64,000 nt of DNA from Ylistrum balloti (lineage: Eukaryota): positions 310,001 through 374,000 of the forward strand of contig NW_026782484.1 in NCBI RefSeq assembly GCF_031769215.1, given 5' to 3'. Under the pieces are notes generated by a model. It was not told the origin of the DNA. It made no database searches and was given only the letters and a program-made list of their open reading frames with translations. Made by a program: the position numbers and the translations under genes. Shown here piece by piece: positions 6,193 to 63,292 of the stretch; the first letter of the stretch is position 1; every line of letters starts with the position of its first letter.

Positions 6193-6429
6193 CACAGAGT
6201 TCACCTACAATATGAATGTCTTTATTATACAAATGTAAGTACAATAATGTATAATGATCTTTTACATCTGATCTTCATACTCGTGACACTGACGTGATGT
6301 ACTGATTATGGCTACGTCTTCGACAGAATGTCACCGACAAATTGTGATGGTTCTGGCTTTGTCTTAAGCTAACTGAATACGGTTGCAATTGGCTGATAGT
6401 GACGTTAAAATATATTGACGGATTGTGAC

Positions 6430-9600: not shown

Positions 9601-12600
9601 TCACGCTTCATCCGCCTTGCTCTTTCTATTTAACACGTACAGCACGCTGGAATACAGAAAAACAAATCAATAAAGATAATTGGTTAATAATAAGTACGAT
9701 GTAGCCATAGGATTATTTTTATTTTGAAAATGAGAACATATACATAAAAATAACATCCCTTTCACCAGGAGCCGCCTGATTTGACCTAAATGTGACCATT
9801 ATTTTTCCATTTCGATGAATTCGGATAGGAAATCGCAAGAAGTATATCCAAATATCAATTTTCAGAAAAATATATCATGAATTTGTGTCATGTATTTAAA
9901 TGTTTTATATTATAATCGTACAGATCTTCATAGTTTCCAGTTGCTAACGGAAGCAATTTGCGTTAAAACAGCTTCAAATGCATTTTGGCAAACCTATAAA
10001 TTTTTTAGGCAACTGAACCTAATCCAGTGTTATCAGAGGCATCTTAAATTTTATGCTCAAAAATTGGTACAAGCATGCGCAGATACCGAAACTTTCAAAC
10101 TTTCAAAATTGATTTTGCGATTAGAATGTCGATGATATTTTACATCAGTGTCTATAGAACAGACAGTAAGACGTTTCTCTCAAGTTAGTGTACTGTTCAT
10201 GGGGTCGGACGTTCCATCTCCACTACCGAAATCATGATATTACACGTATTATTTTTTGCTTGTTTTCAACGCACATTTTTCACAAACTAATTCAATTGGC
10301 AAGTTTTTTTAATCTAAAAATTCATTTTTTACATTCATTGCGACAAGTACTGGCAAAAACTCGACATTATTTTTGGAAAAATAAACTCAGCCGATGAGGT
10401 ATATGATAGTGCTAGTGACATTGAGTCCTAGTGCCGGAGACAAGGTAGAATGTTTTCTCAATGCTCAATAAATCTTATAAACGTTCAAATATCAGGGAGC
10501 AATTCGGCCTTTGAATTGGCATTTTGTGTTGCCTTTTCTTTCAAATTCTACAACTGTGTTCGCCAGCGACGTACATATTCTTTAATTAGATACGATGAAT
10601 CCGAATGCACGTTTACCGGTCGTCATTAGTCATGTTTTTAGGTAGACCAAAGTCGGTGAACTGAAATAAGTGTTCAATCACAGAAAAGTGTCATACCTTT
10701 TTGAATTTAAAGGTGTCACTTGTCTTTTTTTATATAAAAGTTTCTGTATTGATAAACATGCAATACAATATAAGATATCTAATAGTAATTTTGATTGTTA
10801 AAAAATGTATAGTTATTACAGATACTTACAAGGATAACACTAATGCGATAAATAGAAATCCGGCCAGAAAAAGGAATGCTGCTCCTCGGAATATCTCCAC
10901 GGTCTCCCCGTATATAGCGTTAGAAACCACACTACCATAAAGTGAACAAAACGTCTCCACGATAGCCATCCCGGCAAACATACTCCCTGAATTAAAATGT
11001 TTCATTGATCTATGTGTAACGATAAACCGGAGGCAAAATATGAACAAAGTAAAGAAATACATGGAGACACATCACACAGCATTATCTATATCTTTCGATT
11101 TCGAATGTTTTTGGTCCCGACAACCACTAACAAGTACCAGAAGAACGAAACTGCTGTATGATAGAGCATACAATTATGGACCTCATTAAAACAGACGAGT
11201 ATTTACCTTGTTTGTTGTGAGGTGTTAGACGCGACATAATTCCCCGAAGTACTGGCACTGCCATGGTCCTAGCAAAGCTTAACGCAGGAACTGAAACAGA
11301 CAATACATGACTGTATCTGTGACGATGTTATTCATTATAAAATAATGGAGACATGTTGCCTTTAAAAACGAAGTATCACCGAGATGACATACAGGAGGTT
11401 TGTTCTTTGATGTGTTATACATACACATAGCCTACTCACCGAGGAAAAGCATCACAGTGTTGTAGGAAAATGCCTCCAGAACAAACCCAGCGAAATTGGA
11501 GAGAACTGCCAGGATAGCTATGAAACCCTCGTCTAAACACAGTTGTAAAGGACGAAACAAAAGCAGTCCTGTGGCAAAGGGTAGACCCCCACGCAACGTT
11601 ATGTAGGTACCTACTTGCACAGAACTCCAGCAAAATGGCGAGTTCAAGCCATACAAAGTTTCTATTCCATTTCCACCGAACGCTGCCTGAAGGATGCAGA
11701 AATATATTAGCAGACACACTACAAATATCTTTCTCTTTCCCTTTATGGAGCTGTCTCTAACGTAAAACACATAAATGTCTACAGCAAACTGTGTGATAGT
11801 TTTCCTTTGATTGTCCTTCGACTTTTTGAAAGTCTCTGGTACGAAAATCAACAATATTACGGGAATAAGAGAGCAACAGGAACATACTAGCATTGAGTAT
11901 GTGAAACCTACCGCTTTTATTAAGAAGCCGGAAGTAAAACCACCGATTATCAACCCAAATCCTAAAGATATTTCGGTCATGGCTATTATAAATGACCGAG
12001 TCTTTCCTGGCTCTGTGACGTCAGCAACTATGGACATAACAACAGACATGGCTAAAACCCAGGTTCCGCCAATTCCGTCAAAGAAGTTGAAAAACATGAA
12101 TGTATAAATGTTCCAGTTAAAGAACATCCCTAAAGTTATCAGAATACATTTAATCATGTTTCCTGCGAAGGGGATGAGGAGGAAGGGTTTCCTGCCATAT
12201 TTATCACTCAGAGAACCGTAAAACCAAATGCTTAGTATCCCCGGTATCCCTTTTGCCAACTCAAGGTAGATGTTGAGCTGTGCTGCGTGCTTTTGGACGA
12301 TCTGTTGGTCGCTGTACACCTGTGATGTTTTGTTGATTTGACACTCCGACTCGTTAGTACTAAAACTTACATTAGGAAACATAGTCTTGCGAATGTAGGC
12401 GTAGATATATTGTGATGTGATGAGCTGGGTGAGTACGAAACTGTAAATAAGCAACAGCATGATAAATACGAGTATTAAAAACCTAACAAGCGGTTGTCTG
12501 CTTTTTATTTCTGCTACAGTAAGATCATCTGAATGGTCGGATGATTTGACGTCTACACTCGCCGAGACCACTGTGTCTGAATGTTGTTCTTCCGAAAAGC

Positions 12601-12697
12601 TATTCCTAATCGAGACACACGTGCCTTTTGATGTGAATGTCGGTAGGGATTCTTTATTCTCCAAAGTCTGCAGTGAATAATTCTGACGTTGAGCCAT
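9601..12697 (-). CDS. SLC46/PCFT-like MFS transporter, paralog B (~514 aa)
   Basis: Exons 12697-11440, 11290-11207 (84 bp), 10986-10830 (157 bp) and 9646-9601 (FVLYVLNRKSKADEA*). All introns GT-AG, phases 1/1/2, 1545 bp in total. SDKYGRK motif. Confidence 0.92.
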
Positions 12698-12804
12698 AAT
12701 TAACTGAAATATAAATATTCTCAATTCATTCAAACAGTAAACAATATCACAGACATACGTACCTTATTGGAAGGTTGTAAGATCAGAATGGAATTAAATA
12801 AATG

Positions 12805-20600: not shown

Positions 20601-22442
20601 CTGACGGTACATGTCATGTTAAGTTGGTCTCGTGTCACTGACGGTACATGTCATGTTGTTATGGAGGTGCCATGTGACTTTTCAATTTGGGTATATGTGG
20701 TATCACATTACTTATAGTACGTGCCTCACTGTTCAAGTACTTTCATGCAACCTATATAGATTAATATTAAGGTGGTGTAATGTGACTGACGGTACTTGTC
20801 TTGTTGTTCTTATGGTGTCACGTGACCTACAGTACATGTGTCATGTGACTTTGGGTAGTGTCATGTGACTGACGGTACTTGCCTTGTTGTTCAGGAGGTG
20901 TCATATGTGACATGATTGCTCTGATGATTGGCACGGGTAAAGAACCCATAAAACTGATGAAAGCAACTGCAACGTAAGGATTAAACAAAATATAAAAAAA
21001 ATTGAAATGGATGTATAAATAGCTTTTCATAACAATGAATACTTCCCTTTTTTATCTAACACGTTTTAACACTTGCTATGATTTATCTGGATTAAATTTT
21101 TAACCATAAATATCTTCTATATTTACTAAAAAAACTTCCGTCTGTTGGAATATGAATTATACACGAACAATACAACAGAACGTTTCCAATTTTACAGCAG
21201 GAGAAGACTACCTATTAACATCATGAGCTCGGTTGTCGCCAGCGCCTCTAGAACATATCCAGATATATAGGACATTGTTCCCAGGATACCGATCACGTGT
21301 TCATCCATACATGCCTGGAACGTTTTGATGAGTGCCATGCCAACGACAAGAGGCAGTCCCAACCGGAGAGTTGTGTACCAGCCCACTTTTACATGCGACC
21401 AACAGAATGGAGAGTTCAGTTGATACAAGGTTTCAATACCAATCTTTCCGAAATTAGCGAGAAAAATAAAGAACAACCCCACTAAACACGTCCAGAATTT
21501 CCACCGTTTACCAACAGAAGATGTATCTTTAGTGTAAAACAGAAAAATATTTTTTAATGTCTGTATCACACTGTGGCGTCGTGATCTGTCTTTTCTAAAA
21601 GTTTCAGGAAATATGAGAGCAAATATAACAGCAATACTCGCAACAGAAGCGCTGATCGCCATGGCGGTGTAATAACCGACGCCGTCGATGAGGTAGCCAG
21701 ATACAGCAGATCCAACTAGGGCGCCCATACCAACTGCTATCTCTATCAGCACTATACCAAAGGCTCTCGGCTTTCCTGCCAGAGTGATGTCTGCCACGGA
21801 CGCGAATCCGATTGAAAGAGCGGCAATCCAGCCACCAGTGGACCCACCAACAAACTGGAAGGCAAGCAAGGCATATATGTTCCATTTAAGGTATACACCA
21901 ACCGCAAGCATTCCTGTTGCGATAAAATTCCCAGCGACATTTATAAATAAAAACAATTTCCGTCCATATCTATCACTCATCGCTGCAAAGATGAGGTTAG
22001 AAAATATTGCTGGAATTCCAGAGCTAAGCGAGACGTAAATAATATAGGATGAAGTACTGCGTTGGACCACCTGTTGATCTTGATACTCCTGGGAACTTTT
22101 GTTTTCATAACAAATGTTTTCATCATCACTTTTGTTGAATAGTTTACCTGGAAATTTTTCTTCTTCAATGACGTCGTAAACATATTGTGTGATGATCAAA
22201 GAGTTCGTAGCAAAGCAAAAGACCATGATAAACACTATTGGTCCTAGAAGGTAGAATCTCAGCGGGACCTTGACCGAGACACCTGTCCTGTCTGCTGTTT
22301 TAGACTGAGGCAGAAGTGCAGATGTCTCGTCGGTAATTTCACAAGACTCAAATCGGTTAGCTTTCACTTCAGCTTTTACGACAGGATAGGGCGATCCTTT
22401 GGTCGGCTGTTGATGTTTGTTGGGAAGGTCTGGTGTCTCCAT
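17689..22442 (-). CDS. SLC46/PCFT-like MFS transporter, paralog C (~506 aa)
   Basis: Exons 22442-21212, 20966-20883 (84 bp, donor AAG|gcaagt, a GC-AG intron), 20306-20150 (157 bp, GSLFAGVAAVETVCGVVGS...) and probable terminal exon 17737-17689 (MILFVDSRTKKTEIYT*, strong polypyrimidine acceptor). SDRYGRK motif. Confidence 0.88.
18070..19955. repeat. 35-bp minisatellite with 30-bp variants in last intron of paralog C
   Basis: Unit ATAAACTACACAGACTACAAGACAACTATAAGTTT, about 55 copies. Confidence 0.97.
20420..20900. repeat. 37-bp tandem repeat grading into the exon/donor of paralog C
   Basis: Unit GTGTCACTGACGGTACGTGTCATGTTAAGTTGGTCTC; rightmost units converge on the exon-intron junction at 20883. 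Confidence 0.8.
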
Positions 22443-25735: not shown

Positions 25736-27685
25736 AAAAAGATGCGACTCAATTAAATGGCACTATCAGTCTAACAGCACATGGTTTCAAATAATTTTTG
25801 CCATTTCCAGTTTTTGACAGCATCATTTTGTCCCTAAAGAAAGTGAGCATGTTTTCTTTGTGAAAACAAAATGCTGTTTTTGCAATAAAAGAAAATTGTA
25901 TAAAATTACATCATTACTAAGCAGGGGACCAAAATCATTCATTTGTGAAGTTCTGTGTTAAAAGAAGAGCTCCACAAGATTTTCTGCTACTAATTTATAT
26001 CTTTGCTTGCTTTTCATTAAAAAATCAAACTGGCACCAGCACCTTAGATTCTCAATGCTTAGAATTCACCCGATTTATCATCGTTACCGGTATATTATAG
26101 CTGTCACAAGTATAGATGGAAATAGCTGTAAGAATAAAGTCATGGGTTATATATATATTTGGGGTCTATTGTTTTTTTTATCTAAAGTTGAACAGAGCTA
26201 TGAAATGTACAAATAGATATATATATATAGACTAATATATTCTATGTTCCATAAGGACATCTATTCTTTTCAGTCATACCACGGACATTTTACAATATTG
26301 CAGGTAATTCTATCTATTGAATTACATAAATATTTCTTGCAAGGAAAACTGCCTCTTGGACTATCTATGATCCATTGATCATAGACATATGTATAAGTCC
26401 TTTTTCATCAATACATAAATCTACTTCTCCAGCACATAGATGGAAAGCTGTCCCTAAAACATCGTATTGATTTATCAACTTACAAATACATCGGCTGAAT
26501 TCAGATTTGTATCTTTAATTCCTAGTGTTTTTTTGAGACTGAAAGAAGCTTAATGTATTAGCTAGGGTGTTATGTTTACCAGTGTCTGTAGTAATATCTG
26601 CAAAATAACTCGGGCGAATAAATGAGTAATAATTTCAATCATCATGCCATATGATTTAAGTCAAAAAGCCACATGTCACCAGCGCTTGCTTTATCTATTT
26701 TAAGAAGTAGACCATCACTGTCACCGTACACAGGCTTGCTTTAATGCCAGCTTCCTGAAAAACATATACCCCTGAAAATGGATCATCAAACTACATGCCT
26801 CGGATCTTCACCTAAGGTCTGAATACAACATACATCTTTTTGTACACCAACAGACCTTCAGTATTAAGACATGTTTCTTAATCATTTATATGACATAAAA
26901 CAGGAACTGAAAACTCAACAGACAATGGAATTACAATAACAATTTAATGACTCATGATTTCAAAGAAAACATTTTCAAGCTAAAGATACCACATACCAAA
27001 TTGTTGAAATAAAGATTGACATGTATTTGTTTTTACAATCCATTGTTCTTGTATTCAATTTATTTTAACTAAACATTTCAGAAATAGCATGACCTATTTA
27101 AATAAACACAAAAAGTTATCTGTAAAATGTGTATTATATCACTAAACATACTGTCTTGCAATAAAGAGATTAAACCTGGCATGCTCGATTTCAATGTAAT
27201 CCTGTTACTTTAAGCTCTTAATTAATCAGGTTTAATCAGAAGATTTCCCTTAGTTCAAGGCAAATACAACATAATAGTGACAATGAACCGATGGGTTTAT
27301 TTACATGTTATGGTAAATGTGTGCTGTTTCAAGTAAATCAAAACATTAATCAGAGATCAGTTAAACAAATCTCTGCTACTAATATGATGTCTAAATGGAA
27401 CTTAAAACATAAAAAAACACAGTAACCTGAGGAGTTAGTTCACATATGTTTTGTTGATTTGTGGAATAATTCCATTTGTTACTATAGCAGAAAGTGAATT
27501 CCATCCCTGATGGAGAACACACTTGTACATCCTCAAAATTTACCCACTTTACTCCTCTGGACACATCAACTGAACAGAAAACTACTAAGAACCCTCCAAC
27601 AATCATTCCCTCCACAATAACTCCCTTGCAGGTGTCTTTCTCACAATGATGGCTGTTAATGAAAATGATAGGAGTCTGTGTTTGT

Positions 27686-29260
27686 TCATGATGATGATGC
27701 TTGCTTTCTAAGCATCACATAAATCTTCTCCTTCACCCAGTCTTTGTTGTGAGGTACATAAGTCCCAATTTCTTTGTTGTACCTGAAACAGACAAAACAT
27801 CACCATTATCACTGTATATTTCATTTCAGACATAGGATTCAGTAACATAAACATTGTTGTTTTGATAACAAACTTATGGCAAAATATTTCAAACAGAATA
27901 TTTTAATGACGTAATAAGTCACGTTAGAAAAGTATCCACATCCCATAGTTATAACGCATCATGAGTGGACAAGTTGGTCACATTGTGGAAAGAAAACAGA
28001 AAATAAAATAAGTGTTCGAGCACTATTACTGTTCGAGGACTGGGCAGGTTAGTCTACTTCAGTAACACAGGTCAATGTGTCCATAAACAATAAGAGAGAT
28101 GATAAGTATAAATGGAAAGGTCCAGTGAAAACTTATTGTGTTTTATTATAGGCTTGATGTAAAGTTTAACATCCAAAAATGGGACTGTTTAATACTGTAA
28201 GTAAGAAGATATTCTCGCACATATCGTCAAGAAGCAGACGAATATTAAAATTATTACATTACATAGGCAGAAGAAGATGTGTGTTGTTGGGTTTTTTTGA
28301 AGTGAAAAGTCAGGTTGACTTGTCAAAGTATTCCCTATAGATACTGAATATCAGCATCCAATTACAATATCAGTTCTATGGGGAAATTTATTCCAAGAAG
28401 ATTCTAAGGAAAGTCTGTAATTGTGCCTAAGCAAGCAGGACAGAATAAAAGTACAACTTAACACAAGGTGTAAACCCTGGTGGGAATGTTTGAGGATCTG
28501 TACTTACACAAGGCAGCTAAGGTCTGCCAGCTGGTCTAAGAAGTCAAACAACTGTGTGATGTCGTAGGTGATGGAGGGACAGTCAGAGTTGACCTTCTTC
28601 AAGTGCTCCTCAAATATTTTACAGATACCTGAAATGTCAATACAGGTTCATTACATGGGTGTCCAAATATAACAAAACTAAATAATTCTTGCCTACAGCA
28701 TAGTGTCATATGAGTAAATTCAAACTTCCTGTATCATCAAAGTTCCAGACCGATATTATTTTGTTACTAGAATGATCATTGACTTTCATAAGAAACAAAT
28801 TGACCAAAGTTGACACTTTTTTTTTTTATTGTATTCAGTAAATGTTTCATTAGGTGTGTTTTCTCTCATAACCAAAGCAGGGATATGTTTTCAGCAACTA
28901 CCCAATTTCATTAGTTCAGGAATTATAAATTATTCAATAAAAATATGTGTTTGCTCATGGTGTCTGAAAGTTCATTACTAAGTACACGGATTCCATGGTC
29001 ACATGCACTCAATTGGTGATAATCTACCTCAAGAAACTCAGGAGAGGAAGTTTGGTGAAAACCATTTTTGTAATTCCCTGGACAATCTCTGGTATCATAT
29101 ATGTACAACAGGACATGTAACACAGCATTTTGTAGGGGTATATCTGCCAAGACACAAAAAACTGTCACTTACCTTCCATGCATTCATTGATAGATTCGAA
29201 ATCCGAATAGGTACGTGTCTCTGGTTTGTGTGTAGCCTGTACTAGAAGGATCGAGTGAGC
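27686..29260 (-). CDS. ERH: Enhancer of rudimentary homolog, downstream copy (ERH-b), exons 2-4; location of start exon uncertain
   Basis: Exons 29260-29173 (88 bp, [30 protein letters not shown]), 28628-28508 (121 bp) and 27782-27686 ([31 protein letters not shown]). Canonical splice sites, clear ERH sequence. Confidence 0.93.
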
Positions 29261-32065
29261 CTGTATAACAAAAATTTGTAGTTTGTAAGTATACCAACTT
29301 CAGATACACAAAAATCCATGTTTTTATTCATACCCATTAATAACCTGTTTTGTTTTCAATTACCTAAAAAATTCTCATTTGTTTGGGATGTTTAACATTA
29401 CAATTTCAAATTACAAGAATTTCGATTACAAAAAAACAATATTGTAGTAAATAAACTTGTTATTATAACTTCTACTAAACCTTAAACTTAACCAAACTTT
29501 GATTGTAGTATGTACTTGTTTTCTGATGAACAAAAGTATCTTTTTAATGTGAAAGAAATAACAATGAAGATCAACAATTTTTTATTAAGGGACTAACCAG
29601 GTCATACTACATATCTTATGTGTTCTGATAATTGGAAACCAGTTAAAACGTGCCTAAAAATGTCAACTTCTGTTAACGATTATCAGCTGCCAATAGTCGC
29701 CAGTCACATAGGGTGCAGCATTTGTGAAAATTTTCAGTGTCTATTTGTGTCTCGCTCAGATCTTTTGAATCTGTCTGTGAGTAGTACTCTTAAAAAACTG
29801 TACACTCCATACATACACTTTGCACAACTGTATCTGTAATGATATGTATAAAAACAACAACAAAAAGTTCCTCTTTCTTGTTAACAAGCATTTATTTCGT
29901 TTGACATATGAACAGCACAAATTTCAAATATAAAGCATTAATCGTCATAGTATACATCACATTTGATATTTCCATCTTTAGATAAAGAATAACTTCTGAT
30001 GTAAAGAAAAAGAATAAACAGCAAATAATGCACAAATGGATTTTATAAGGAAAAGATTCATGCGAGACTTAATTCAATCAATAAGTATGAGTATAAATTA
30101 ACATATACAAAAGCACTACACATTAATACTCTTCATAAGGCAAACAAAAAGATGATATCTGGCAATATCCAGATTACAACTTTTTAAAGAAACAGATAAA
30201 AGACATGGAATCAAGACATACATTTCATTTAGACCTTATCTCCTAGTAATACCCTCTCTTTGTCTTCTCCTGTAACCCAACCCCCCTACAACCTAATCCC
30301 TATAAATATCCTACCCTCTTTTTAATTTACCGTCCTGCTTCACTATTAATTCATCATTATGTCACCTGAAAGCTTTGTATCTTATGAAAATGATGAATAT
30401 GGTCCTTATGTAGTTTTTCATAGCAGTAGTGCAATTTAAGTACATAGTTATCTATAATTATTTTTTCCGGTTGGTAACAGACCTGGAAGGAGAACATTGA
30501 AATAATGTCTTAATGTAATAAAACTTAAAAATTCAAAACACATGCTGATGGATAAAAAATGTGGTGCAGTTATCTATTTACAGGTATACTTTTCTTGTAG
30601 CTCTGCAGATAAGCTACACCAATTTAACTGTGAGACAAAAGCAAAAGTGTGCAGTCAGCCAACTTATCTGTCAAAACAATATTGAGACATTCTACACTTG
30701 TGATGGTTATCGAGACAGGCATATATACAAGTATAGACTAAGTGCACACTAGTCAAACATCAATAACAAATGCCATATGATTATACAAAATGTACTATTT
30801 AGATGCTTACAGCATAATAAGGAGTTATACTTAAACCAAACTCCCTGTATTTCAAAAATGGTAAAAAGATATTTACATAAATCTTAATTACTAAACTAAA
30901 ACTTAAGGAAAACAAGAGTAATAATAATGGGTCTATATATCATCAATGTCTCGTTAAGTTGACATATCACCGTCATCATACTGTCTTCATGACTTCTACA
31001 CTTTCAACAGTGTTATTAAGGCTGATATAATATATAGACATTTGTGATAAATACAGTTGGCCACATTTTTAGCTAGTTCATCAAACCCATTTAGGCATTA
31101 TAAAATGTTTAATGCATGTACTTCTATACAGTTAGATGTAAGGAACACTGAAGGTATCCAAAATCCAATATTGTATTAAATTACATGTACCATTTTAACT
31201 TGTCACAACCTTAGATATCAATACCTACTCGTGATACCGACATTCAATAATTAGACATATAGAGATACATGAAAAGAAAAAAACAATGTGATCTATAGGT
31301 TTTTCATACCACAAAAAAACTTTTACCATTTTACCCTTGTATCAAGCAACCCTTACTTTTTCTTTCTACAGAGACCTGTGAGTTTCTAAATCGACCTGTA
31401 ACATCTATTTTTAAACTGAGGGTTCTTCCTGCTGAAAAAAATTCTGATTTCTTTTAAATTATGTGAAATTGGCAAAAGAAAGTTATCCAAATTTCTGAAG
31501 TGCACAGTCACGTAAACTAAGATTTAAATTCACATTTCAACAATAAATGGGTAATAAATTTGACTCAAGTTTTAAAAATATCTTTAATTTTAACATTTAA
31601 GGAGCACCAATTTGATAAATAATGATCATTTCTTATACATAATATTCTATTGTTTAATATTCACCTTTTTCACCAGTCTAATGATCAGCAGTACCTTGGA
31701 GATTTTTCTTACAGAAAAGGATACAAAATAATTTTCCTTTCAAAACTTTCCATAGAATAGAAAGCTACAAGATTTTGGAGACTAGAATTCAGATCATGCA
31801 GTAAAAGAATACTGATCATGCTGTAAAGCTTCACCACACTTTTCCAATCTAGTTACCATAGAACATTTATATTTATACTCCATTTCCTACAGGATATTTC
31901 AAATCTTACAAGATCTCATTTAAGATGTGGAGTCTTCAGCGAAAAGAAGACATGCTAGATACTCTTCCAGAATAAGACATCTTGAAGTATGTTATTTTAT
32001 AAGGTCTCTATTCCATCCTTATTTTGATGCAGATTCTAAAATATAACTACATGTCCAGTCCATCC

Positions 32066-35000
32066 TTATTTTGATGCTTGTCTCCTTAGCATGATATAGA
32101 TCTTTTCCTTAACCCAATCTTTGTTGTGTGGAATATAGGACTTTGAGTGTTTCTGGAATCTGCAACATCAAATAATACTTCGACCATTAATGCATAGGAA
32201 ATTCAAGGATTCAAAGATACAGGAATATTGAATGGTGTATTATAAAAGTTGAGATGAACAGTAACCTTAGTACATGTACACTATAACTATATATAAAATG
32301 TACATGGACAAGCTTTAGAATAGTGACAATCATATCACAGAGTGGTGCACACTGTTTTTTTTTAGTATATTACAATCTAAGGCAATAGCTAGTACATTTT
32401 GTTCTGTTATTGTCTGTTACATGTATTCTTAATAAAATTGTACTTTCCTCACATATATCACTCAATACTAGTTATAAAACCAAGGGATACATAATATACA
32501 GAAGTGTTAATGGTGAAGGAAGTACACAGACAGGTTTTCCTAATTACTCTTTAACATTACAATCTCAGTCATCAGATAGTAGTGATAATCATGTGTTCAT
32601 ACACTTGTGCTTTCATAGTAACTAATTAATCATAGCATTTCTGCTAGTGAAAGCATTTTTGCGAGTGATAGCATTTATATATCACTAAATAATAACTACA
32701 TAAATCAGGTATAAATCAGAAAGTAATGACAATCAATCAATGATGATGTAAGAGTTGAAGCACAAGTGAAAACTTGCTAGAGATAACTAGTTATCAAAAA
32801 AATTCACAAAATCAAGATACGTTGTCTTCAAAAGCTGTAGATCTGATAACTCACACAACACAGCTGAGGTCATGTAACTGGTCCATGAAGTCAAATAATT
32901 GGCTGATGTCATATGTTATGGAGGGGCAGTCCGAATTGATCTTCTTCAAATGTTCTTCAAATATTTTACAAATACCTGTGAAGAAAATTCAACACATCAC
33001 AAAATTGACATGTTTATAAAAACTATTATCAACAAAAATACATATTTTTTATGCAAGAACATCCTCATTAAGGCAATTTTACATAAATTTATTCTTCATA
33101 CAATTTGGCAAATTATAGTTCCTCATTGGATGTGAAATTACATGCAAAATTTACTTTTTCTTAGACATAGGTCAAAGTTCCCAGTGAGGGACCAATACAT
33201 ATTACATCATCTAAAGTTTTAGATACAATGAAATATAGCCTCCCATTTTCAATCCATGCACAAGATATTGACAAGCCACATAACCAGTTTCCATCTGACA
33301 ATTTCCCATAAAGAATATGGATATTTCAACAAATTGCAGTCTAGAAATCTAGACATTTTAATATCAAGTTTGCAATTTTACACATTTAGGTTTACGGTAG
33401 GATTTATTTCCTAATGATTCTTGTTCCACAATAATACAAGTATGTACCTTCCATACAGTCATTCACTGACTCATAATCAGAATATGTCCTTGTTTCTGGC
33501 TTGTGAGTTGCCTGCACAAGCAGAATGGTGTGCGCCTGAAATAAAAGCAACAAATCATATATCAAAATGAGTTCAAACAGAGAAACATAATGCATAAAAT
33601 GTTACACTGCAATACCATTTATTTCATAAAAATAAAATTGAAATTATAATTGTTTCATACAAATGAATATGAGTTGAAATATATATTATGACAATGCCAT
33701 CATAACCAGTACATTATATGCAGATATTTTCTTTAAGTAAGTTTGAAAATTGCATGGCATAATCATCATGACTAAGTACTTCGTATAAGAACATAAACTT
33801 AATATTCAAATGTCATCAAATTAAATTGTAATATGTAAATTTAATGTGTTTTAGTTTTATTACCATATCATGATCACCTTCATCTGCTTCAATAAATGCT
33901 TCTGATGCCTCACACAGCAATACAACTGTGAAATAATGCCACAGATCTGCACAATGCCACGAAACACTAAGAATACCGAAATTAAAGTTTTCGAGTGATA
34001 CTGATAAATAGTACAATCCATTTAAACGCCACATTTTTTTAATGTTTCTCTGTTGACACTGTGTATACATGTATGATTTTTTCGGTGTTAAATTTTATTT
34101 ATTATATATTGCATGGGTGCTATAATTACAAATAATGCAAAAAAATGATTTCTTTTTTGTTTTACTAATGAGGATTCATAACAGATAGAGAGCTGTAGCA
34201 ACTCTGTATACGCACGCGTAACATTGATCATCTCACACGCTGGTGAAGCATCATCCAGCAATCTGCTCACTTCTCATGCAAATATATTCATGATCAGAGG
34301 CTGCAAAATGTGTATGAAAAATGCAACAGGAGATAGCTAGTAACTCGAACCATTCCAATCTGGTACTCATCTTAATGGTGTACATGTTCAAAAAAATGAA
34401 TATTTAACCAATCAAGACAAAAGTAAGCTTATTTTCTGTTAACAATATATATTATTTCTGGTTTAAAGACATCAAAACACTCTCATTGGTTACAAATGGT
34501 TGAAAAGATGTCTTCTGAAAAAGTGGTAAATGTCTTTCATATATATAGGAGTTATGTTATGACTTCAATATGTTTCATTTTCATTTCATGAAATTGATGT
34601 TACTGAATGGGCTTCACACTCACTGGTCATGTACTCACCAGCTATAATGCCTCTGTATTGTCACCATTATGTTTGCCATAGACTATCATTTACATACAGG
34701 TTCTGGTCACAATTTAGTTAATATTCACCAATTACAATATATTTTGTTACTGCTAACATTACATCTTCTTGCATTCTCTTTCAAGCAGTCCACCAATCAG
34801 TTGTAAATAATGATGCAGTGCTTCATAATGAGATGGAGATGTTTTTTGTATTATTTTTTAACAAGTCTTTCCTATGACATCAAAGCAAACGCTCCCATTA
34901 AGCCTAAATGGTGGCGAGTCAGACGTTCTATAACATGCTGGTCATGAAATTGTGCAAAATATTGCTCGAGTTCTCTCCCTTATCGTTCAACACTGTTTAG

Positions 35001-35328
35001 GCCTCTAAAAGAAAAGTAAAATATCAACACGTACATTCATTGCAGGGACAAGTGGACAGATATGGGTAAAACATTTGGTCATTTTCAGGTACGGTCTTGC
35101 TTATATCATTGGTTAGTCCTTTGCGCGAGCTCGATATCGCCATCATTTGCGCACGAGTTCGCCATTTTGAGTGCGAGATGGAATGGTACAGGTAAAGGGT
35201 TGCTCTTTGCATGCAAACAAAGCCATAGCTACTCTTTCCGTTCAACAGCTAGCAGTCTTGAGAAAAGACGAAACATGTCTATTCACAAAATGGACATAAA
35301 ATAAACGTTATTACGCTAATTTTACCAT
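32066..35328 (-). CDS. ERH: Enhancer of rudimentary homolog, upstream copy (ERH-a, 101 aa)
   Basis: Probable ATG-only exon 1 at 35328-35326 (aaaATG|gtaaaa); exons 33535-33448 (88 bp, [30 protein letters not shown]), 32975-32855 (121 bp) and 32159-32066 ([30 protein letters not shown]). Confidence 0.92.
33864..35146 (-). other. Candidate alternative 5' exons of ERH-a (35146-35035, 34300-34271, 33925-33864)
   Basis: Each piece has good splice signals (gtacgt; ttttgcag/gtgagc; atttcacag/gtaata). The chain is stop-free and in frame with exon 2a. Could equally be 5'UTR exons. Confidence 0.45.
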
Positions 35329-35756
35329 TTTCACTAAGGACGTCACTTCAGTTGTAAAAATTCTTGGTTGTAACTGCGGGATTACCTTCACAAAATTTTT
35401 TCGGATATCCTTAGTATTTACCATCGAATTCATAGATATTTATGAGATATTCCGAATGAATTTTTATTTTCCCTTATATTTTCTGATGTTGAAATTAATC
35501 ATTTCCTAGGTGATAATTCGTGATTTTTAAGACCAATACACATTCTTTAAAAAAGATATTTTATTAGAGAAAAATGACCAAATAAATTAACGAAAATATT
35601 CGCTACATGGATAATCTGTATCAACGACAAGCTTGAAAATACTACTTACTCAAACATTTTACTAACCTTAACATTTGGGAGCCATGTAGGCAAAAAAACC
35701 TTGGAAAGCAGGCAACAAACACTCTTCGACGTTAGGACACTTGCTTAAATCCGACA
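35329..35756. promoter_or_regulatory. Bidirectional promoter region between ERH (-) and SLC39A9 (+)
   Basis: Divergent start codons 428 bp apart; the surrounding 35100-35800 interval is locally richer in CpG and has a YY1-like CGCCATTTT at 35160-35168. Confidence 0.7.
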
Positions 35757-38700
35757 ATGGACGACGTATTTACTCTCATTTTGCTATCATTTGCCATGCT
35801 TGTAGGATGTTATCTTTCTGGTTTGATTCCAATTGTTATAACATTTTCAGAGGTAAGCCAGCTGTGTGGTCGGTGATTGAATGTACAAGTTTTACGTCTT
35901 CTATTATGGTCTTTCAACAGGCGAAACTGACTTTGGAAGTGTATGTGATAAATAACTAACATATGGTCAAAAGGTCTGAGATTTTAGGCTGGCTGGAATA
36001 CATTTAGGCTCTCCCCTCCCTAGTTTGATATAACTTGTACCATTGACAGTGAGTTCCGTGGTATGTGTTCAAATCACTTGCTTAAATATTTATTTTGTTG
36101 TAAAATCTGTTAACGGGCTCGGGAAGAAAGTGTGATTGTGGGTTGAGAATACACATAAATATACCCCTTCTCAAGTATAGTGTGAAGAATTATAACTGTC
36201 TATCCATCCATGATTTCGTTTGCATGACCAATTTCACCGCATCCATGGTGGGTGCGCTTCTGTCACTTTCATGTCCATACAATCTCTAAAACGAGACTAT
36301 TTGATAAAAAATGTTGCTATCAAAATCAACAAAATAAATGTGAAGAATGACATTAAATTATGATTTTAGAGACAGAAATTTTCTGTCTCAAATCTGATAG
36401 CCTATCCTGTATAGTAACATTATTTTGTTAAAGAGTAAATTGAAAAAAGATATCCCTAGTCTGGTACCAAGAATCTATGATTTTACATGACTGATTGGAA
36501 AAAATAGATTTGTAGATGATGTTCTTGTCTTCTTTGACCTTTTGAACTTTACAGACTGATTGGATGAAATTGAACAAGTTAAGTATCAGCATACTATATA
36601 TATATATGTCTCGGAACAAAAAGTCTTGGTACCAGTTAAGTTAACTAGATCTGATTTGATTTGTAGCTCCATTGATTGTCATCAAAAAAGGACAGATATA
36701 TCATAGCCTACTGATCCCATGTCTGTAAACTGCAATAAATGTAATCTAAAATTAAACCAATAATTATTATATAGCTTTCTTCTGTATGTCTTCTCTTCTG
36801 CCATTAAGCATCCTAAAGGTACACACAGGATAAAAACAACATTTTACATATATACAAATTACTGTGTAGCAGAAAACTTCGATAAGAAGTGATAATGTCC
36901 AGAAGATTGTACATTTTCCCTATCACATCAAAATTATTAAACGTTGATAAATAAATATCTATAGATTTATTTGGAGTCATTAAACCAATTAAACAGTTAC
37001 AGAAACAAAAAGGAGAAATTGTTGTTAGTCAAAGAAAGTTGTCGTTTCACAAGTGTCAAATGTGTGGACTTTTTATATTGGCATTCACTGTTTTCGAACA
37101 AAACAGTTCATTGTTGAAATGCTATCTGTCTGTCAGCTGTGTCCCACCTACACCTTCATCTTCATGACACTTTCCTACATAGAGGACAAACCCACTTAAA
37201 TTTACAAATTAGTGTCAGGAAGAAAGATGTTCATGGATATACAAACACCTATTATTAAATTTGTTAATAATATTTTGTTAGGTCTAGTAAAAATGGCATG
37301 ATTGCACTAGATTTCAAAATTGTTATCCATTTTTTATCCTGTTCTCTATTTAACTGAATCTTTTATTATCAAATTCTTCATGAGGTGGTCATTTTTACCT
37401 ATATTTCATACAAATAGGACAAATGGGTACACACAGTGATATTTGAATTCTGTGGATTGTGAAAAAATCTTTGGTAACCACACGTGTAAGTTTTGCCTTA
37501 ATTCAGTTAGTGGGAAAATTTGACTTCTTATCTAAGGTTTGATAACAAAATAAGCAAGTGAGCAATATATGCTTGATATACGCATACCTCTTGTTTTATG
37601 GTGTAACAATGACATAATAGATTTGTGTCAAGGTTTTTCTAGCAATAGATAGGGTAACTACTTGAACTTTATGAAGCTGATGAAAAATTATCAGTAAGTG
37701 TCTACAGCAAAGAAACTGCTGAACTCTACATTATAGTTGCAGAATTGAAATATAGCTTGATGTGTTACAAATTATAAGCTTATTTTCCCATCCTAAATGG
37801 AATGTATGTAGTATTGTTATTTATTGAAAAATATTGTTTGAACTATGTTAGTTACAAATCACTGAAGCGTGTGAGTGATATAATTATATAATGCCATAAT
37901 TGTTGTTCAGTGACTAAGGCTGATGAATAATGACTATGCCACTAACTCATAATGACTGTTCCATGTCAATGCTGCTTTGCATATTAATTGGAAATGTACA
38001 AATGATATTGGTTATCTGCTGAAACATATTCATGTCTTGATTTTCCTTTTAGAACTGAAGCATTTCATCAGAAATTATATCAGCCCACCACAAAGTTGTA
38101 AGTCAAGGAATGAAATATAATCACTAGGACTATAGAGAGAAAAAGCATCCTACATCCTAATCATTGGTATTTTGTAGGAGAAGTTGAAGTTAATCACAGT
38201 ATTTGGAGCAGGTCTCTTGGTGGGGACCGCGCTTGCTGTCATCATTCCTGAAGGAATCCATGCCATGAGTGAATCAAGCACTGGTAATATATTTTACAAA
38301 GAGCCATAGAGTGAAGTATTTTTTCCAATCTAGTGCTGATAATATACACAACACACCAAAAACATTGTGCATACATCATGCTGATATTATGAGTACATCG
38401 TCTTCACTCATGTATGATACAGTACCTAGTCCACAACTGTGAGATAGGATTGCGCATTTGGTGAGGTTTGGTTAAAATGGATGATTCATATTATGGATTG
38501 AAAATTAAATGGAAAACTTGTATAATCATGGCTAAACAATGACCATAGTTGTATTCATTATTGATAGATGATTATAAAGGTCATAATGAAAATTTTCATG
38601 GGGAGTCTATAGTTGCCATTTTGTCCCTCCATCTTTCCATCCCTCCTTTCATGTCCTTAGCATGACTTTCTCAATGGTTAAGCAGGGATGATGAATCTTG

Positions 38701-41700
38701 GTGAATACATTTGTCATACTATGGCAATGTGCAGTATGCCAAATTCAGAACCTTTAAAACCTCAAACACGGAGATATTCGCCTCTTAAAATTTTGTGTCC
38801 AGAGCATAGCTTTGCTTACATTTAAACTAGGATAATGTAACTTGATGTAAACATTGATTAACAAAGACAATGTGCATTGTACAATATTAGGGCAGACAAC
38901 TCCTTAATGACAGAACTAATACCCTTTGTAAAAATTAAGTGTCTTTAGCATAACTCATCATTAAAATAGGATGATGTAATTTGGAGTATAAAACACTTAA
39001 TTTGCAGCCTACAGCCCCTTAATTACTGAGTTATTGCCCTTTGTTAAACTTTTTGTGTCCATACTGTAGCTTTGTTTTCATTAATACTGGGAACATGAAA
39101 CCTTTGTATACATTGGTCATACTAAGAGGATGTCAAGTATACCAAATGCAGTGTCTGAAACCCCTTAATTACATAATTATTACCCTTTCATAAATTTGTT
39201 GTGTCCAATAACATTATTTTCGGGGAGCATTTATCATTTTCACTGATTCTCGTGTTAATTTGGCAGTTATCAAAATACAAGGAGACTCTGCATTTATAAG
39301 TCTCAACAATTTGATTTCAGAATTCTTCTTCTCAACATCCAGATATGGTAGAATCAAATACTTTTCATGGATGGAAGCATCTTAACGTGCTTTACCAAAA
39401 TTGTGAATTTCATGGCCCCAGGGTCTCACATTTCTCTGTGGGGAGGAAGTAAATAGATTTTTGAGCATAATTTGTATAATTTCCACCTGAAATATTTCTA
39501 ACTTGTTTAGAATTATGAGCAAAGGATGGCAGCTAGATGGTATGTATCTGACTGACCCCTAGGGGCTGAAGGCTGGGGCCAAAGGGGGTAAAATTAACTG
39601 TAGATTTTAAAAAAATCTTCTTCGCAAGACACAGGTATGGTAGAAGCAAATGTTCTTCATGTATTGAAGCATCTTAAGATTCTTTTAATTACTAAAATGG
39701 GTCTCATATTTTTTTCTTGGAGTGGAGGTTGACTTCACGATGATTTTTATAGAGAAATTGCATTTTTTAGCATCATTTTGTTTATTTCCCACTGGAAATG
39801 ACTTAGCAAGAATTATTATATAGGATGACAGTTTTGATGGTATGCAGGAATTGACACTGGTTAACTATCATCAGTGTCACAATTGTCACAAATGTCATGA
39901 CACTTGAAAGCTACTTTACCTTTAACCTTTATAATCAATATTGCTTATCTCAGGAGACCATCAAGGCTGCTAAGCCTCTTGTTGTGATATTACACTGATT
40001 CTGTACCCTGGGATATATTTCGTCCCAGATTATTTTCGCCATTTTACGATTATACATGAATTCCCCTCATGTTCCCTTAACCCTCTGAGGATGATATATT
40101 AGGGTTACAGTATATAAGTGCAACAAATTTTTGTACTCATCTTAAATTCACCCTCCCTGTTATTGGATGAAAAGGGCGGAAAATAAATGGGGCAGAAATT
40201 GCTGGGTATACAGTATATGATATGTCCTGATCATGAAATGTATATTGTCAATCCATTTTTTATAAATGATCATTAGTCAATCATCAATTGCTTCGCTAGA
40301 ATTTGTGATTTAGTGCCATAAATGTCCTGTATAGCTTCCCTATAAAACTTCCTCTCACTCATCAAAGTAATTGTTGTGTTGTGTTATTTGTCTTTACAGA
40401 TACCCAGAGTCATGACACAGTACACAGCGACTTACCAAACAAAGACCAAGGTTTGAACACCGTGGATGGCCACACCCACACCCACACCCATAGTGTCTCT
40501 GACAACCACACCATCATTGGGGTGACACTAGTGGCAGGATTCATCTTCATGCTTCTTGTTGACCAGATTGGAGGTGGACATGCACATGGGTCTACAGGTG
40601 CGTACATGGTTATGGATTTGAGAAATTAGGTAGACATAAAGAAAAAGATATATATGAAAGTTGACAACAAGAAGCAGGAGTAAGAAAAAACGAAAGTGAT
40701 CAGCTGTTTAATTTACCTTTGCTTTAAAATTTGCCTGGGCACAGAAGTGAGTGAACTGGTGGCCCTCTTTGTACTAAGAGACAAAACCAGTTGCAGAAAT
40801 ATCCATTAGTATTAATGACAATATCTTCCAATGTTACTATATGTACCTACCTGAGTGATGAACTATGAGGATTCTCGATTTTCTGTGTGTATACACCAGG
40901 TTTTACATTTTGCATCAGTTCTCCTTTTTCTGTGTATATATACCAGGTATTAAAACTCGTTTTGGTTTTCCATTTGGACAGTCTCTGTTATGATTTTGTA
41001 CTTGAAGTTTAGTTTGTTTAGTTTGTAAATTGCCTGTTAATTACTATTTTCAGATGCTGAATCAAATGGAGCTGGATCAACCATCCAACAAAATCGACAC
41101 AAAATCACAGCCACACTGGGTTTGGTAGTACATGCTGCTGGTAAGCCCCTTGTTAATTCAGCTGTAAACATAGTGACAGTAAGCACATTCTTTTTCTGAC
41201 ATTTATCTACAATGATGTGACAGAGAATCTCACCGTCTCTCCTTACTGGATAGGACAAAGATAAACCTGTACATTACCTGCGATGCTAGAAGTAACTTGA
41301 ATACCAGAAGGTTAAGAGGTGTGCAGATTTAGTGGTAAATGTTGGTAAACTAAGTAAATGTTAATTTTAGGTCTCCAGAGAAACTCTTATTTACCATTGT
41401 TATTTTAGGTTACATGAATGACTGTAGGTTACCATACTTACTATATGTAGATCTATATAGTTATCACAGGTTACCATAGATATTACAGTTTACATAATTA
41501 CTGTAGATAATCAGAAGGTTATCATAGTTGTCATAGATTACTATAATATTATGATAGGCTACCATAGTGGCTGTAGGTTACCTGAATTACTGTAGGTTAC
41601 CATAGTTACTGTAGATTACTGTAGCTGGTATAATCATCTTAATTATTTCAAATTGCCAACGTTTATTATGAGTCACATGAATTACTGTTCAGTAGGTTAC

Positions 41701-43232
41701 CAAATCTAGTTTAGGTTACTTGATGAAGTCAAGTCTACTGAATTGATTTCATTCACATGAATATCTTTTGTTACTGTAGGTCATCAGAGTTAAGTTAGCT
41801 CTCCTGATTTAGTTTATGTCGTGTGGGTTGATAAGGTCTCCTGAGCTATTGTAGACCAACCAAATTAATTAAGGCCATGTCCTATATGAACCTCAACCAT
41901 TGACATAATATAATTTCAGCATTTTGAATTGTGCTTCAATTTGGATTTGAAGTCATGTGTTTCTTACTGATAAGTACATACATCATTGTTGTAATTGTAG
42001 CTGATGGTGTTGCTATGGGAGCAGCAATTATGATGCAGCGATCACACTTAACTCTAATCGTGTTTATAGCTATCATGTTACATAAGGTAAGTGTGTATAG
42101 CTTCCTGTTGTAGACTCTATATATATGTGTATAGGTATGGTGCTGATGTTGATCTGTTTTAAATGACAGTAACCATGTAACTGATACCTATAATTAGTAA
42201 TTGGTCGTATATATCATCAAACATAAGTACCTGTGTTTTCTTATAATTGTTAATTAGTAACTGTGTAATTATAGCGGTTTCTTATGAACCTGTTATTTTT
42301 CAATTGTGGTGTTACATAATGGTTTTTCAGGCATCCATTAATTAGAACTCTATTATAACATGTTTTTCAGGCACCTGTTAATTAGGAATTCTATCATAAC
42401 ATGTTTTATAGACACCTGTTAATTAGGAACTCTGTGGTGACATATTTTCAGAAACCCTAAAGAAAAATAAACATATTTTGCAGATACCATTCAATTAGGA
42501 ACCCTATGATAACTTGTTTTGCAGGCACCTGCTGCTTTTGGTTTGGTTACCTTCTTATTACACGATGGTTTTGATCGACCCAGGATACGAAGACATTTGT
42601 TAATATTTTCAGCGTCTGCTCCAATAGCCTGTATTTTTACTTATATAGGATTATCTCTTAGCCAGGTAAGATAGAATTATCTGACTATTCAACCATTAAA
42701 AGTTAAGCTGTCTGTCACTCAAGATTCTACAATTATCTAAACAATCACTCTCCATACAATAGACCTTGATTGGAGGAAATGTTACCTAGAATTATCTAAA
42801 CATGTAACCCTCATATAGTCCTAGCTGTTCACTATAAAAGATGCATTGATATCAACCAAATTAATTTGTATTTAAATTGCAGGTTGATTTTTTATATTTT
42901 TTTACAAAGTATTTGTACAATCTGATGACTTTAGGTGTTAGAGTCCTTTCGTCACTGTTAATGTTTCATTTTGTTTCTGTTTGTAGGGAAGTTTAGGAAA
43001 ACTTCATGACTTTCAAACCACAGGCATTGCCATGTTATTTAGTGCTGGGACATTTTTGTATGTGGCAACAGTACATGTTCTTCCAGAAGTGACCACTCGT
43101 CATACAAAACAGACCAATTCTGACAACACAGTGATCATTCATGAACAGAAGGGATTCCGGCCGATTGACCTAGTGGCCATAGTGACTGGTTCTGTAATAC
43201 CGGTATTGTTATCATTTGGCCATAAACATTAA
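35757..43232 (+). CDS. SLC39A9: Zinc transporter ZIP9 (319 aa)
   Basis: Exons 35757-35852, 38178-38283, 40400-40597, 41054-41140, 42001-42086, 42525-42665 and 42987-43232; all GT-AG, 960 bp in frame. Motifs [40 protein letters not shown] and [14 protein letters not shown]. Confidence 0.97.
38590..39260. mobile_element. Probable decayed Helentron/DINE-like element in ZIP9 intron 2
   Basis: 5' TCCC/TCCA-type microsatellite remnant, several degenerate internal repeats (CCCTTTGT..AA..TTGTGTCC near 38780, 38920, 39035, 39180), and a GGGGAGCATT...CTCGTGTT end. Confidence 0.45.
39310..39760. repeat. Degenerate ~290-bp direct duplication, likely transposon-internal
   Basis: CTTCTTC..AA...CAG.TATGGTAGAA.CAAAT..T..TCAT..AT.GAAGCATCTTAA occurs near 39325 and again near 39618. 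Confidence 0.55.
39995..40215. mobile_element. Degenerate MITE with imperfect terminal inverted repeats
   Basis: Left CTGTACCCTGGGATATATTTCGTCCCAGATTATTTTCGCC resembles the reverse complement of the right end GGGCGGAAAATAAATGGGGCAGAAATTGCTGGGTATACAG. Confidence 0.45.
41400..41620. repeat. Degenerate ~20-bp tandem repeat in ZIP9 intron 4
   Basis: Recurrent GGTTACCATAG.TTACTGTA-like units. Confidence 0.65.
42315..42530 (+). repeat. ~41-bp tandem repeat made of copies of the ZIP9 exon 6 acceptor
   Basis: TTTT(C/G)AG|GCACC-like junctions at 42330, 42370, 42411, 42451, 42483 and the true acceptor at 42524. Confidence 0.8.
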
Positions 43233-55011: not shown

Positions 55012-55505
55012 ATGAAGTCATCATCTGCCGCACTAATTGCGATATGCTTCTGTCTCGGTGTGTCATGCGCACTGGGAGCCGGATACGGAACCGGATATAA
55101 TAGCTATGATAATTATGGAGGCGGATACAGCATGAATTATGGAAGTGGCTACGGAAGTGGTTACGGAAGTGGCTACGGACACTCCAAGGGATACGGAAAG
55201 GGATACGTCTCCTCTGAGACTATCATCAGTCAACCTTACGCCCAGCCCTTGGCCCTTCCCCCAGTACCACCAATCACAGATAACGATGGTCTTTTTGGAC
55301 TCGGCGGAGGAAGTGGACTGCTGTGTAGGTTTCCTAGATATACGCTTTATTTCATTGAAATACATTTGATATAATATTTCTTTAAACTGAAATTCATTTC
55401 GTGTTTTATGTTGCTGCTACGATCTGATGTTCTATAATGTATCTTTCATTTACAGTGCTCGGTCTGCCCCTCCTTCTCCTCTTGAGGAACTCCAACTCCG
55501 GTTAA
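55012..55505 (+). CDS. Secreted Gly/Tyr-rich structural protein 1 (120 aa; shell-matrix/adhesive-like composition)
   Basis: Exons 55012-55324 and 55456-55505. Signal peptide MKSSSAALIAICFCLGVSCA, (GYGS)n repeats, Pro-rich linker, C-terminus [28 protein letters not shown]. Confidence 0.88.
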
Positions 55506-62610: not shown

Positions 62611-63292
62611 ATGAAGTCGTCATCTGTCGCCCTTATTGCGATTTGCCTCTGTCTCGGCGTGTCATGCGCCTTTGGAGCCGGATATGGTTCCGATTATCAT
62701 GATTCCTACGGAAGCAATGGAGGTGGATACAACATAGGATATGGTTATGGAAGCGAATACGGAAGTGGTTACGGAAGCGGATACGGAAGTGGTTACGGAA
62801 GCGGATACGGACACTCCAAGGGATACGGAAAGGGATACGGAAAGGGATACGTCTCCACCGAGACCATCATTAGACAACCTTACCTCCAGCCAGTCGCTCC
62901 CCCACCACTACCACCACCCGACAATGACGAAGGTCTTTTTGGACTCGGCGGATCTGGACTTCTGTGTAAGTAATTTAGCTGTTAAAATATCTATATTTGT
63001 CTTTTTTGTATCATATTGATTACATTTCTCAATTTCCTTATATCTCTTGTTAGACCATTTACCCCTTTTCCGAGATCTACAACGGATGTATTCATCGGTA
63101 GACGTTTGTCCCAACTCTGACGTCCGCTGTGCATTGTTATACTACCTACCTGCTATATTTATAGATGCAAATGTCTATAACCATGTATTATTTTCATATT
63201 TATGTTTTGTACTTATCTTATAATGTGACCTTTCATTTACAGTGCTCGGTCTGCCCCTCCTTCTTCTCTTGAGGAACTCCAACTCCGGTTAA
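62611..63292 (+). CDS. Secreted Gly/Tyr-rich structural protein 2 (134 aa), paralog of protein 1
   Basis: Exons 62611-62965 and 63243-63292; same architecture with more GYGS/GYGK units and an identical C-terminal [16 protein letters not shown]. Confidence 0.88.

Follow-up and report, generated by a model that had tools for sequence, protein, structure and literature searches.

Tandem ERH exon cassettes in scallops that probably share a first exon of a single codon

Layout of the ERH locus in Ylistrum balloti

The stretch of DNA analysed here, 64,000 nucleotides (nt) of the genome of the scallop Ylistrum balloti (contig NW_026782484.1, positions 310,001 to 374,000; hereafter the window, which contains no N and whose positions serve as coordinates throughout), carries on its minus strand the gene for ERH, an extremely conserved nuclear adaptor protein that is almost always encoded by a single-copy gene, with C. 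elegans and Physcomitrella as the only two-gene examples named in a 2023 review (PMC10605862). In Y. balloti the block of exons 2 to 4 is present twice in tandem, and we consider it likely that the two blocks, cassettes a and b, are alternative 3' cassettes of one gene that use a common first exon, in which the ATG is the only codon. The coding features and the polyadenylation-type signals are as follows (aa, amino acids):

35326..35328, minus strand: coding part of exon 1, a lone ATG with the donor gtaaaa after it; in the annotation, the 101-aa and 102-aa products both start here
33448..33535, minus strand: exon 2a, 88 nt
32855..32975, minus strand: exon 3a, 121 nt
32066..32159, minus strand: exon 4a, 94 nt including the TAA stop; spliced product identical to XP_060079538.1 (isoform X2)
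31583..31658, minus strand: earliest hexamers resembling a poly(A) signal past the a stop, ATTAAA at +408 and +478
29173..29260, minus strand: exon 2b, 88 nt, first codon Ala2
28508..28628, minus strand: exon 3b, 121 nt
27686..27782, minus strand: exon 4b, 97 nt including the TGA stop; spliced product identical to XP_060079537.1 (isoform X1)
27296..27301, minus strand: AATAAA, probable poly(A) signal of cassette b, 385 nt past the b stop

An earlier note on this DNA had described two intact exon 2-4 cassettes with exons of 88/121/94 and 88/121/97 nt, and it proved right in every coordinate, length and splice site. All internal exon boundaries of both cassettes are of the ag...gt type, and the phases are equal in a and b. 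The stops lie at 32066 (cassette a) and 27686 (cassette b), so that each cassette has a stop and a poly(A)-type signal of its own. Downstream of the a stop in Y. balloti, ATTAAA but no AATAAA was found within 1.5 kb; the resulting contrast between the signals of a and b is suggestive, but it does not hold consistently across species. The spacer between the copies is AT-rich, as the note had it (GC fraction ~0.30), and has nothing in common with the promoter or with intron 1: a self-comparison of 32066-37000 with 26000-32065 returned the three exon pairs only, with no promoter or intron sequence shared between a and b. A relic of a duplicated exon 1 or promoter near cassette b was considered and rejected, as the self-comparison was otherwise empty and neither the motif CCCGCAGT from upstream of exon 1 nor the core of an alternative upstream exon, 1' (both described below), recurs there. 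No further ERH-like sequence was found anywhere else in the window. A scan of 26500-36500 against Rfam gave no credible match, and a snoRNA or another known RNA in the introns or the spacer was rejected.

An assembly artefact is ruled out by two lines of evidence. First, unitigs from a DNA run (~9x depth, with scattered single-nucleotide polymorphisms) tile 29173-35172, which comprises cassette a, the spacer and exon 2b, with two ~20-base gaps; one unitig differs from the window at 15 positions over 4447 bases. Second, the same tandem layout is found in three other scallop genomes, Pecten maximus (locus L002), Argopecten irradians (L003) and Mizuhopecten yessoensis (L004, whose sequence contains 392 N), which were compared with the Y. 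balloti locus (L001), and exon 1 reads aaaATG/gtaaa in all four (the slash marks the end of the exon).

Two predicted ERH proteins

With the ATG added, cassette a encodes a protein of 101 aa and cassette b one of 102 aa; both are identical to the Y. balloti proteins in RefSeq, and our locally spliced models reproduce the RefSeq proteins exactly in all species. When the six cassette exons were searched singly, each matched the Pfam family ER (PF01133), covering profile positions 2-29, 31-69 and 71-98 with E-values of 1e-14 to 5e-7, all above the curated cut-off. In both cassettes the introns lie in phase 0 after Met1, in phase 1 in Gly31 and in phase 2 in Val71, giving the exons of 88 and 121 nt; human ERH has these three intron positions and phases, and the location of the first intron, in phase 0 directly after the Met codon, is widespread in eukaryotes (PMC10605862).

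The a and b proteins are identical at 82 of 101 positions. The earlier note had counted about 19 substitutions, clustered after the sequence DLSC, and many silent changes; our count gives 19 codons with an amino-acid change and 38 with a silent one, and the cluster is there. The proportion of synonymous differences between a and b in Y. balloti is 0.81 and the nonsynonymous divergence (dN) 0.13; over all a-b pairs the synonymous proportion ranges from 0.81 to 0.93, above the 0.75 expected at saturation. Third codon positions are richer in GC in b (0.51-0.54) than they are in a (0.42-0.49), and codon or composition pressures may differ between the two cassettes.

Thirteen differences are consistent, i.e. 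they separate all a from all b proteins (positions 4, 27, 55, 61, 65, 73, 75-77, 80, 93, 97 and 101), and when measured against oyster, derived states are present in both paralogues. The b protein of Y. balloti (P0010, isoform X1) matches the human ERH chains 1w9g/2nml over residues 1-100 with an E-value of 2e-48, and the b-type protein matches the C. elegans ERH-2 chains with an E-value of 2e-25. The possibility that cassette b is an orthologue of ERH-2 is ruled out by this weaker match together with the grouping of b with scallop a in the protein tree (support 94/93, see below). Judging from these comparisons, the product of cassette b is a canonical ERH.

Selection, age and loss of cassette b

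Between scallop genera, the ratio of nonsynonymous to synonymous rates (dN/dS) of the a orthologues is 0.02-0.05. For cassette b it is 0.019 between Y. balloti and P. maximus and 0.14 between either of them and M. yessoensis, with dS of 0.9-1.3 across the b comparisons. The low ratios of both cassettes indicate that they have been under strong purifying selection since before these genera split, and by this measure cassette b is clearly functional. The earlier note had called both copies intact, and the exons, splice sites and frame of b are indeed intact in three scallops. In a protein tree that also contains oysters, Solemya, gastropods, a chiton, an octopus and other animals, scallop a and b together form one clade (94/93), inside which a (88/86) and b (99/95) each form a group. 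Since this clade stands apart from the other animals, the duplication is specific to the scallop lineage and older than the split of the four genera.

The fourth scallop differs. In the cassette b region of A. irradians (L003:15975-22407) only exon 2b is visible, with a frameshifting 2-nt insertion, and it is followed by a 5.9-kb satellite of 133 copies of 45 bp. Neither exon 3b nor exon 4b was found in the fetched sequence, which ends ~130 bp past the satellite, and RefSeq lists a-type isoforms only for this species. Thus, cassette b appears to have been lost in the A. irradians lineage. As loss is tolerated in one lineage, one might ask whether the Y. balloti copy, too, is a pseudogene, silent or in decay; we give this hardly any credence, because exons, splice sites and frame are intact in Y. 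balloti, P. maximus and M. yessoensis, and dN/dS values of 0.02-0.14 are maintained at a near-saturated dS.

Comparison with other molluscs

The loci of two oysters (L005, L006), the ark shell Tegillarca granosa (L007) and Haliotis (L008) were compared with those of the scallops. An exon 1 consisting of the ATG only is present also in the oysters and Haliotis, in which a single cassette is followed by a Sororin-like gene. From this comparison and from the intron positions given in PMC10605862, the ATG-only exon 1 and the intron positions in phases 0, 1 and 2 are ancestral.

In T. granosa an intact second cassette (L007:18055-21042; exons of 88/121/97 nt) lies 4.7 kb downstream of the first. 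The annotation treats this cassette as a gene of its own that encodes 132 aa, with an AT-rich first exon that we judge to be a dubious ab initio prediction. In the tree this cassette is not grouped with scallop b, and the approximately unbiased (AU) test does not reject such a grouping (p 0.14). Either it arose in parallel, or the duplication is old and its signal is obscured by the shortness of the alignment.

Outside the molluscs, an ERH model of the cockroach Diploptera punctata (P0111, 146 aa) contains an extra segment resembling exon 3 before a complete ERH, which hints at a partial tandem duplication of ERH exons in an insect too.

The start codon of cassette b

The open frame upstream of exon 2b runs into a stop without offering an ATG, and inside the product Met first recurs at residue 29. 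Cassette b therefore lacks a usable in-frame ATG and requires an upstream exon that ends with ATG in phase 0. In the annotation of contig JAUZWB010000348.1 (GCA_031769215.1), whose positions 300001-364000 correspond to the window, the coding ranges of both products begin at 35328, that of the 101-aa product ending at 32066 and that of the 102-aa product at 27686; XP_060079537.1 (b) and XP_060079538.1 (a) are isoforms X1 and X2 of one gene. In P. maximus, three consecutive accessions (XP_033735181-3) represent an a-type isoform X1 of 105 aa, a b-type isoform X2 and an a-type isoform X3 of 101 aa, and the a and b coding ranges begin at one common base. The b-type protein of M. yessoensis (XP_021360404.1) is named isoform X2. 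The shared ATG-only first exon is already part of the existing automatic annotation, albeit unpublished. We reason that an ab initio extension would be unlikely to pick a 6-kb intron across a full cassette in Y. balloti and to do so again in P. maximus, and a b-type isoform is listed for M. yessoensis too, which suggests that the RefSeq b models are backed by RNA-seq support for the intron.

An older GenBank model of M. yessoensis (OWF47009.1, 217 aa; L004:10001-22300) joins exon 1', exons 2a-3a, a stretch of intron and exons 2b-4b; this fusion is almost certainly a prediction artefact.

The non-coding elements of the locus that bear on the origin of the start codon, and the neighbouring gene, are as follows:

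35757..43232, plus strand: neighbouring ZIP transporter gene (PF02535), a called gene (L001 2097-9572), head-to-head with ERH
35373..35380, minus strand: motif CCCGCAGT, candidate core-promoter or transcription-start-site element, ~45 nt upstream of the ATG
34210..34312, minus strand: conserved non-coding block of intron 1, with the core TTGCTGGATGATGCTTCACCAGCG; from blastn against the three other scallop loci and alignment
33864..33963, minus strand: upstream exon 1' (alternative), ~100 nt, ending in ATG/gtaat; from the alignment of four scallops
31859-31857, 31329-31327 and 31193-31191, minus strand: three ATG/gt candidates in the spacer, all within 31191..31859
30013..30173, minus strand: conserved block of the spacer, candidate regulatory element, non-coding, 750-900 nt upstream of exon 2b

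The ZIP gene is head-to-head with ERH in all species compared (the four scallops, the oysters, Tegillarca and Haliotis), and in Y. balloti ~430 bp separate its coding start (35757) from the ERH ATG; the two genes probably share a bidirectional promoter region. The motif CCCGCAGT occurs once in positions 9000-18000 of L001, and CCGCAGT is invariant across the four scallops at ~45 nt upstream of the exon 1 ATG.

Each of the three Y. balloti candidates in the spacer was taken with 80 nt on either side and compared with the spacers of the three other scallops, exons 1 and 1' serving as controls. Exon 1 with its 80-nt flanks aligned in all three species (E 3e-4 to 3e-9) with the ATGGT in register, and exon 1' aligned in the three species as well (E 7e-19 to 8e-28). 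None of the three candidates gave a significant alignment that keeps the ATGGT in the three other scallop spacers, and the lists of spacer ATGGT sites in the four scallops contain no context common to different species. The earlier note had named ATG/gt sites in the spacer that could provide cassette b with its own start and thus make it an ordinary duplicate; such sites exist, but none of them is conserved among the four scallops.

The spacer of P. maximus (L002:15100-15560) contains a 40-bp minisatellite of ~12 units with an ATG/gt in each; therefore, chance ATGGT sites arise easily in such spacers.

These results have to be set against the view that cassette b is an ordinary tandem gene duplicate, equipped with its own fast-evolving promoter and an ATG exon in the spacer, for instance at 31329-31327, and that the RefSeq isoform is a rare read-through product or a model artefact. 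Several observations speak for it or weigh against a single gene with a common ATG exon. Exon 1 and the site at 31329-31327 have the 12-mer aaaATGgtaaaa in common, and the distance of that site to exon 2b (2.07 kb) resembles the length of intron 1a (1.79 kb). Within the spacer, the block at 30173-30013 alone has been conserved across Y. balloti, P. maximus and M. yessoensis, and it could be a promoter, regulatory or start element specific for b. The second cassette of Tegillarca is annotated as a separate gene. The protein clusters that contain a and b comprised NCBI genome-derived members only, and transcript-derived scallop ERH proteins were not found. Finally, splicing over a complete upstream cassette with its poly(A) site is kinetically disfavoured, and the b isoform could be a minor one. 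However, in contrast to exons 1 and 1', no spacer ATG/gt is conserved in position or context among the four scallops; neither an ATG nor a reading frame is maintained between species in the conserved spacer block; the annotated b coding range begins with the shared ATG both in Y. balloti and in P. maximus, and the M. yessoensis b protein is named isoform X2; and the first exon of the Tegillarca model is AT-rich and, as stated above, probably of ab initio origin. On this balance we regard a separate gene with its own promoter as unlikely.

Two further remarks concern the conserved spacer block. Coding potential was considered for it and rejected, since its ATG is not maintained between species and indels disrupt any reading frame. 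Inside TATTTGCTGTTTATT, the block contains a TGTTTAT (forkhead-like) core.

The earlier note had singled out the ATG/gt exon at 35328-35326, in promoter-like sequence, as the one convincing upstream exon. This exon is indeed conserved, but it is not the sole one, as the conserved exon 1' at 33963-33864 had been missed. No other non-coding block of the locus is as conserved as exon 1', in which ~60 nt are >90% identical in four scallop genera. The exon ends in ATG/gt in phase 0, and in P. maximus, M. yessoensis and A. irradians it provides in-frame N-termini of the type MKGKM, MKVKM or MTIKM; this M-K/T-x-K-M start explains the 105-aa a-type isoforms (P0216, P0004, P0219). In Y. balloti the exon differs in length by 5 nt, so that its first two ATGs are not in frame, and these upstream ATGs may act as a translational brake. 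From its conservation, its phase and its in-frame starts in three species one could argue that cassette b is fed mainly from exon 1', or from both upstream exons, with the choice of first exon and of cassette coupled. We find this highly unlikely: the annotated b products have 102 aa and begin with MAHS from exon 1, not with MK.KMAHS, and the first two ATGs are out of frame in Y. balloti.

The other conserved block of intron 1 lies 110-240 bp past exon 1 in the other scallops, and in Y. balloti ~900 bp of extra sequence intervenes. The GCTGG...CCAGC of its core could make a short hairpin, and the block has no Rfam match.

A model of the locus

We propose that the scallop ERH locus is likely to be one gene with two alternative 3' cassettes that are read from a common ATG-only exon. 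The common exon suggested by the earlier note agrees with the annotated start at 35328 and with the comparative evidence, from both of which we infer the exon 1-2b junction itself. Two further suggestions of the note, heterodimers and perhaps a germline small-RNA role in the manner of C. elegans ERH-2, are speculative. According to this model, the promoter region situated head-to-head with the ZIP gene would drive a first exon that consists of the 5' untranslated region and the ATG. Spliced to exons 2a-4a, with their own stop and weak ATTAAA-type signals, this exon would give the 101-aa protein; spliced past the whole of cassette a to exons 2b-4b, with their own stop and AATAAA, it would give the 102-aa protein. 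The output would be two ERH proteins that are 82% identical and have only the initiator Met codon in common. The choice of cassette would likely be made by competition between the 2a and 2b acceptors and by bypass of the poly(A) site of cassette a.

Long-range RNA pairing of the docking/selector type, in which the spacer block would pair with exon 1' or with the block in intron 1, was considered as a means of choosing the cassette and rejected, as it gave no consistent gain over shuffled sequences: in three species the duplex energies had z-scores of +0.2 to -2.9 relative to the shuffles, one value being below -2.

As for the origin, a tandem duplication of the exon 2-4 block would have taken place in the scallop stem lineage. 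Because the ancestral exon 1 encodes the Met only and joins the next exon in phase 0, the new block could be expressed at once without a promoter of its own. It is tempting, and with some doubt we consider it possible, to extend this scenario: because exon 1 encodes only Met, a duplicated exon 2-4 block may have been recruited more than once, independently in scallops and ark shells, as an alternative cassette within a single transcription unit. These bivalves would then possess a regulated switch between two ERH proteins, possibly with heterodimers, run from a housekeeping bidirectional promoter; the scaffold for dimerisation and partner binding would stay the same, and changes would be confined to the surface loop 73-80 and a few helix positions.

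The locus would illustrate cleanly, in a natural setting, how a partial duplicate without a promoter can become functional immediately when a phase-0 intron follows the ATG, and an ERH pair with 13 paralogue-specific fixed differences could serve to map partner specificity. The impact on general ERH biology will be modest until expression and partners are known.

Other observations in the window

Downstream of ERH, three paralogous long open reading frames (ORFs) of 416-433 aa stand in tandem on the minus strand (4954-6204, 11432-12733 and 21192-22442), and one of them overlaps a gene called MFS_1 (PF07690). In oysters and Haliotis this side of ERH is occupied by the Sororin-like gene instead. 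On the plus strand, two paralogous ORFs of 120 aa each (55012-55374 and 62611-62973) are rich in Gly, Tyr and Ser and look secreted.

Relationship to known systems

Tandem exon duplications have given rise to clusters of mutually exclusive exons, of which one homologous exon set is included per mRNA and in which identical phases keep the frame. The scallop ERH locus resembles them in having tandem homologous exons with identical phases. It differs in that the duplicated unit is a block of three exons that comprises all of the coding sequence but the start codon, and in that each block has its own stop and 3' end, i.e. the blocks are groups of alternative last exons and encode whole paralogous proteins; selecting a cassette would thereby also select a poly(A) site. 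In the cholinergic locus (unc-17/cha-1, VAChT/ChAT) and in lola and mod(mdg4) of Drosophila, one promoter and a common 5' exon serve alternative downstream units. The ERH locus as modelled here is like them with respect to a single 5' exon serving alternative coding units. However, the units of those loci encode either unrelated proteins or C-terminal domains that vary behind an N-terminal part common to all, whereas those of ERH encode paralogues that share one codon.

Within the ERH family, Drosophila e(r) undergoes an SXL-mediated polyadenylation switch with a long form enriched in the ovary (PMC10605862). There the choice of the 3' end regulates the output of ERH, as it may in scallops, but the switch alters only the 3' untranslated region and leaves the protein unchanged. 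C. elegans, with ERH-1 and ERH-2, has a lineage-specific second ERH, and ERH-2 is a subunit of PETISCO/PICS (PMC10605862). Judging by their names in that paper, these are distinct genes, and they are strongly diverged. Our literature searches returned no paper that links ERH with scallops or describes such an arrangement, and the cited work (PMC10605862) deals with neither molluscs nor isoforms.

The closest precedent is the set of RefSeq scallop models, which describe the same object, a and b being isoforms of one gene that start from one ATG. They are silent on the origin of the arrangement, on selection, on its conservation in four genera, on the loss in Argopecten and on the parallel in Tegillarca, all of which are added here, as are the age of the duplication and the ancestral state of exon 1. 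Among the known systems, scallop ERH as modelled here is a tandem exon-block duplication with mutually exclusive 3' cassettes, and it is unusual in that the part shared by the two products is one codon.

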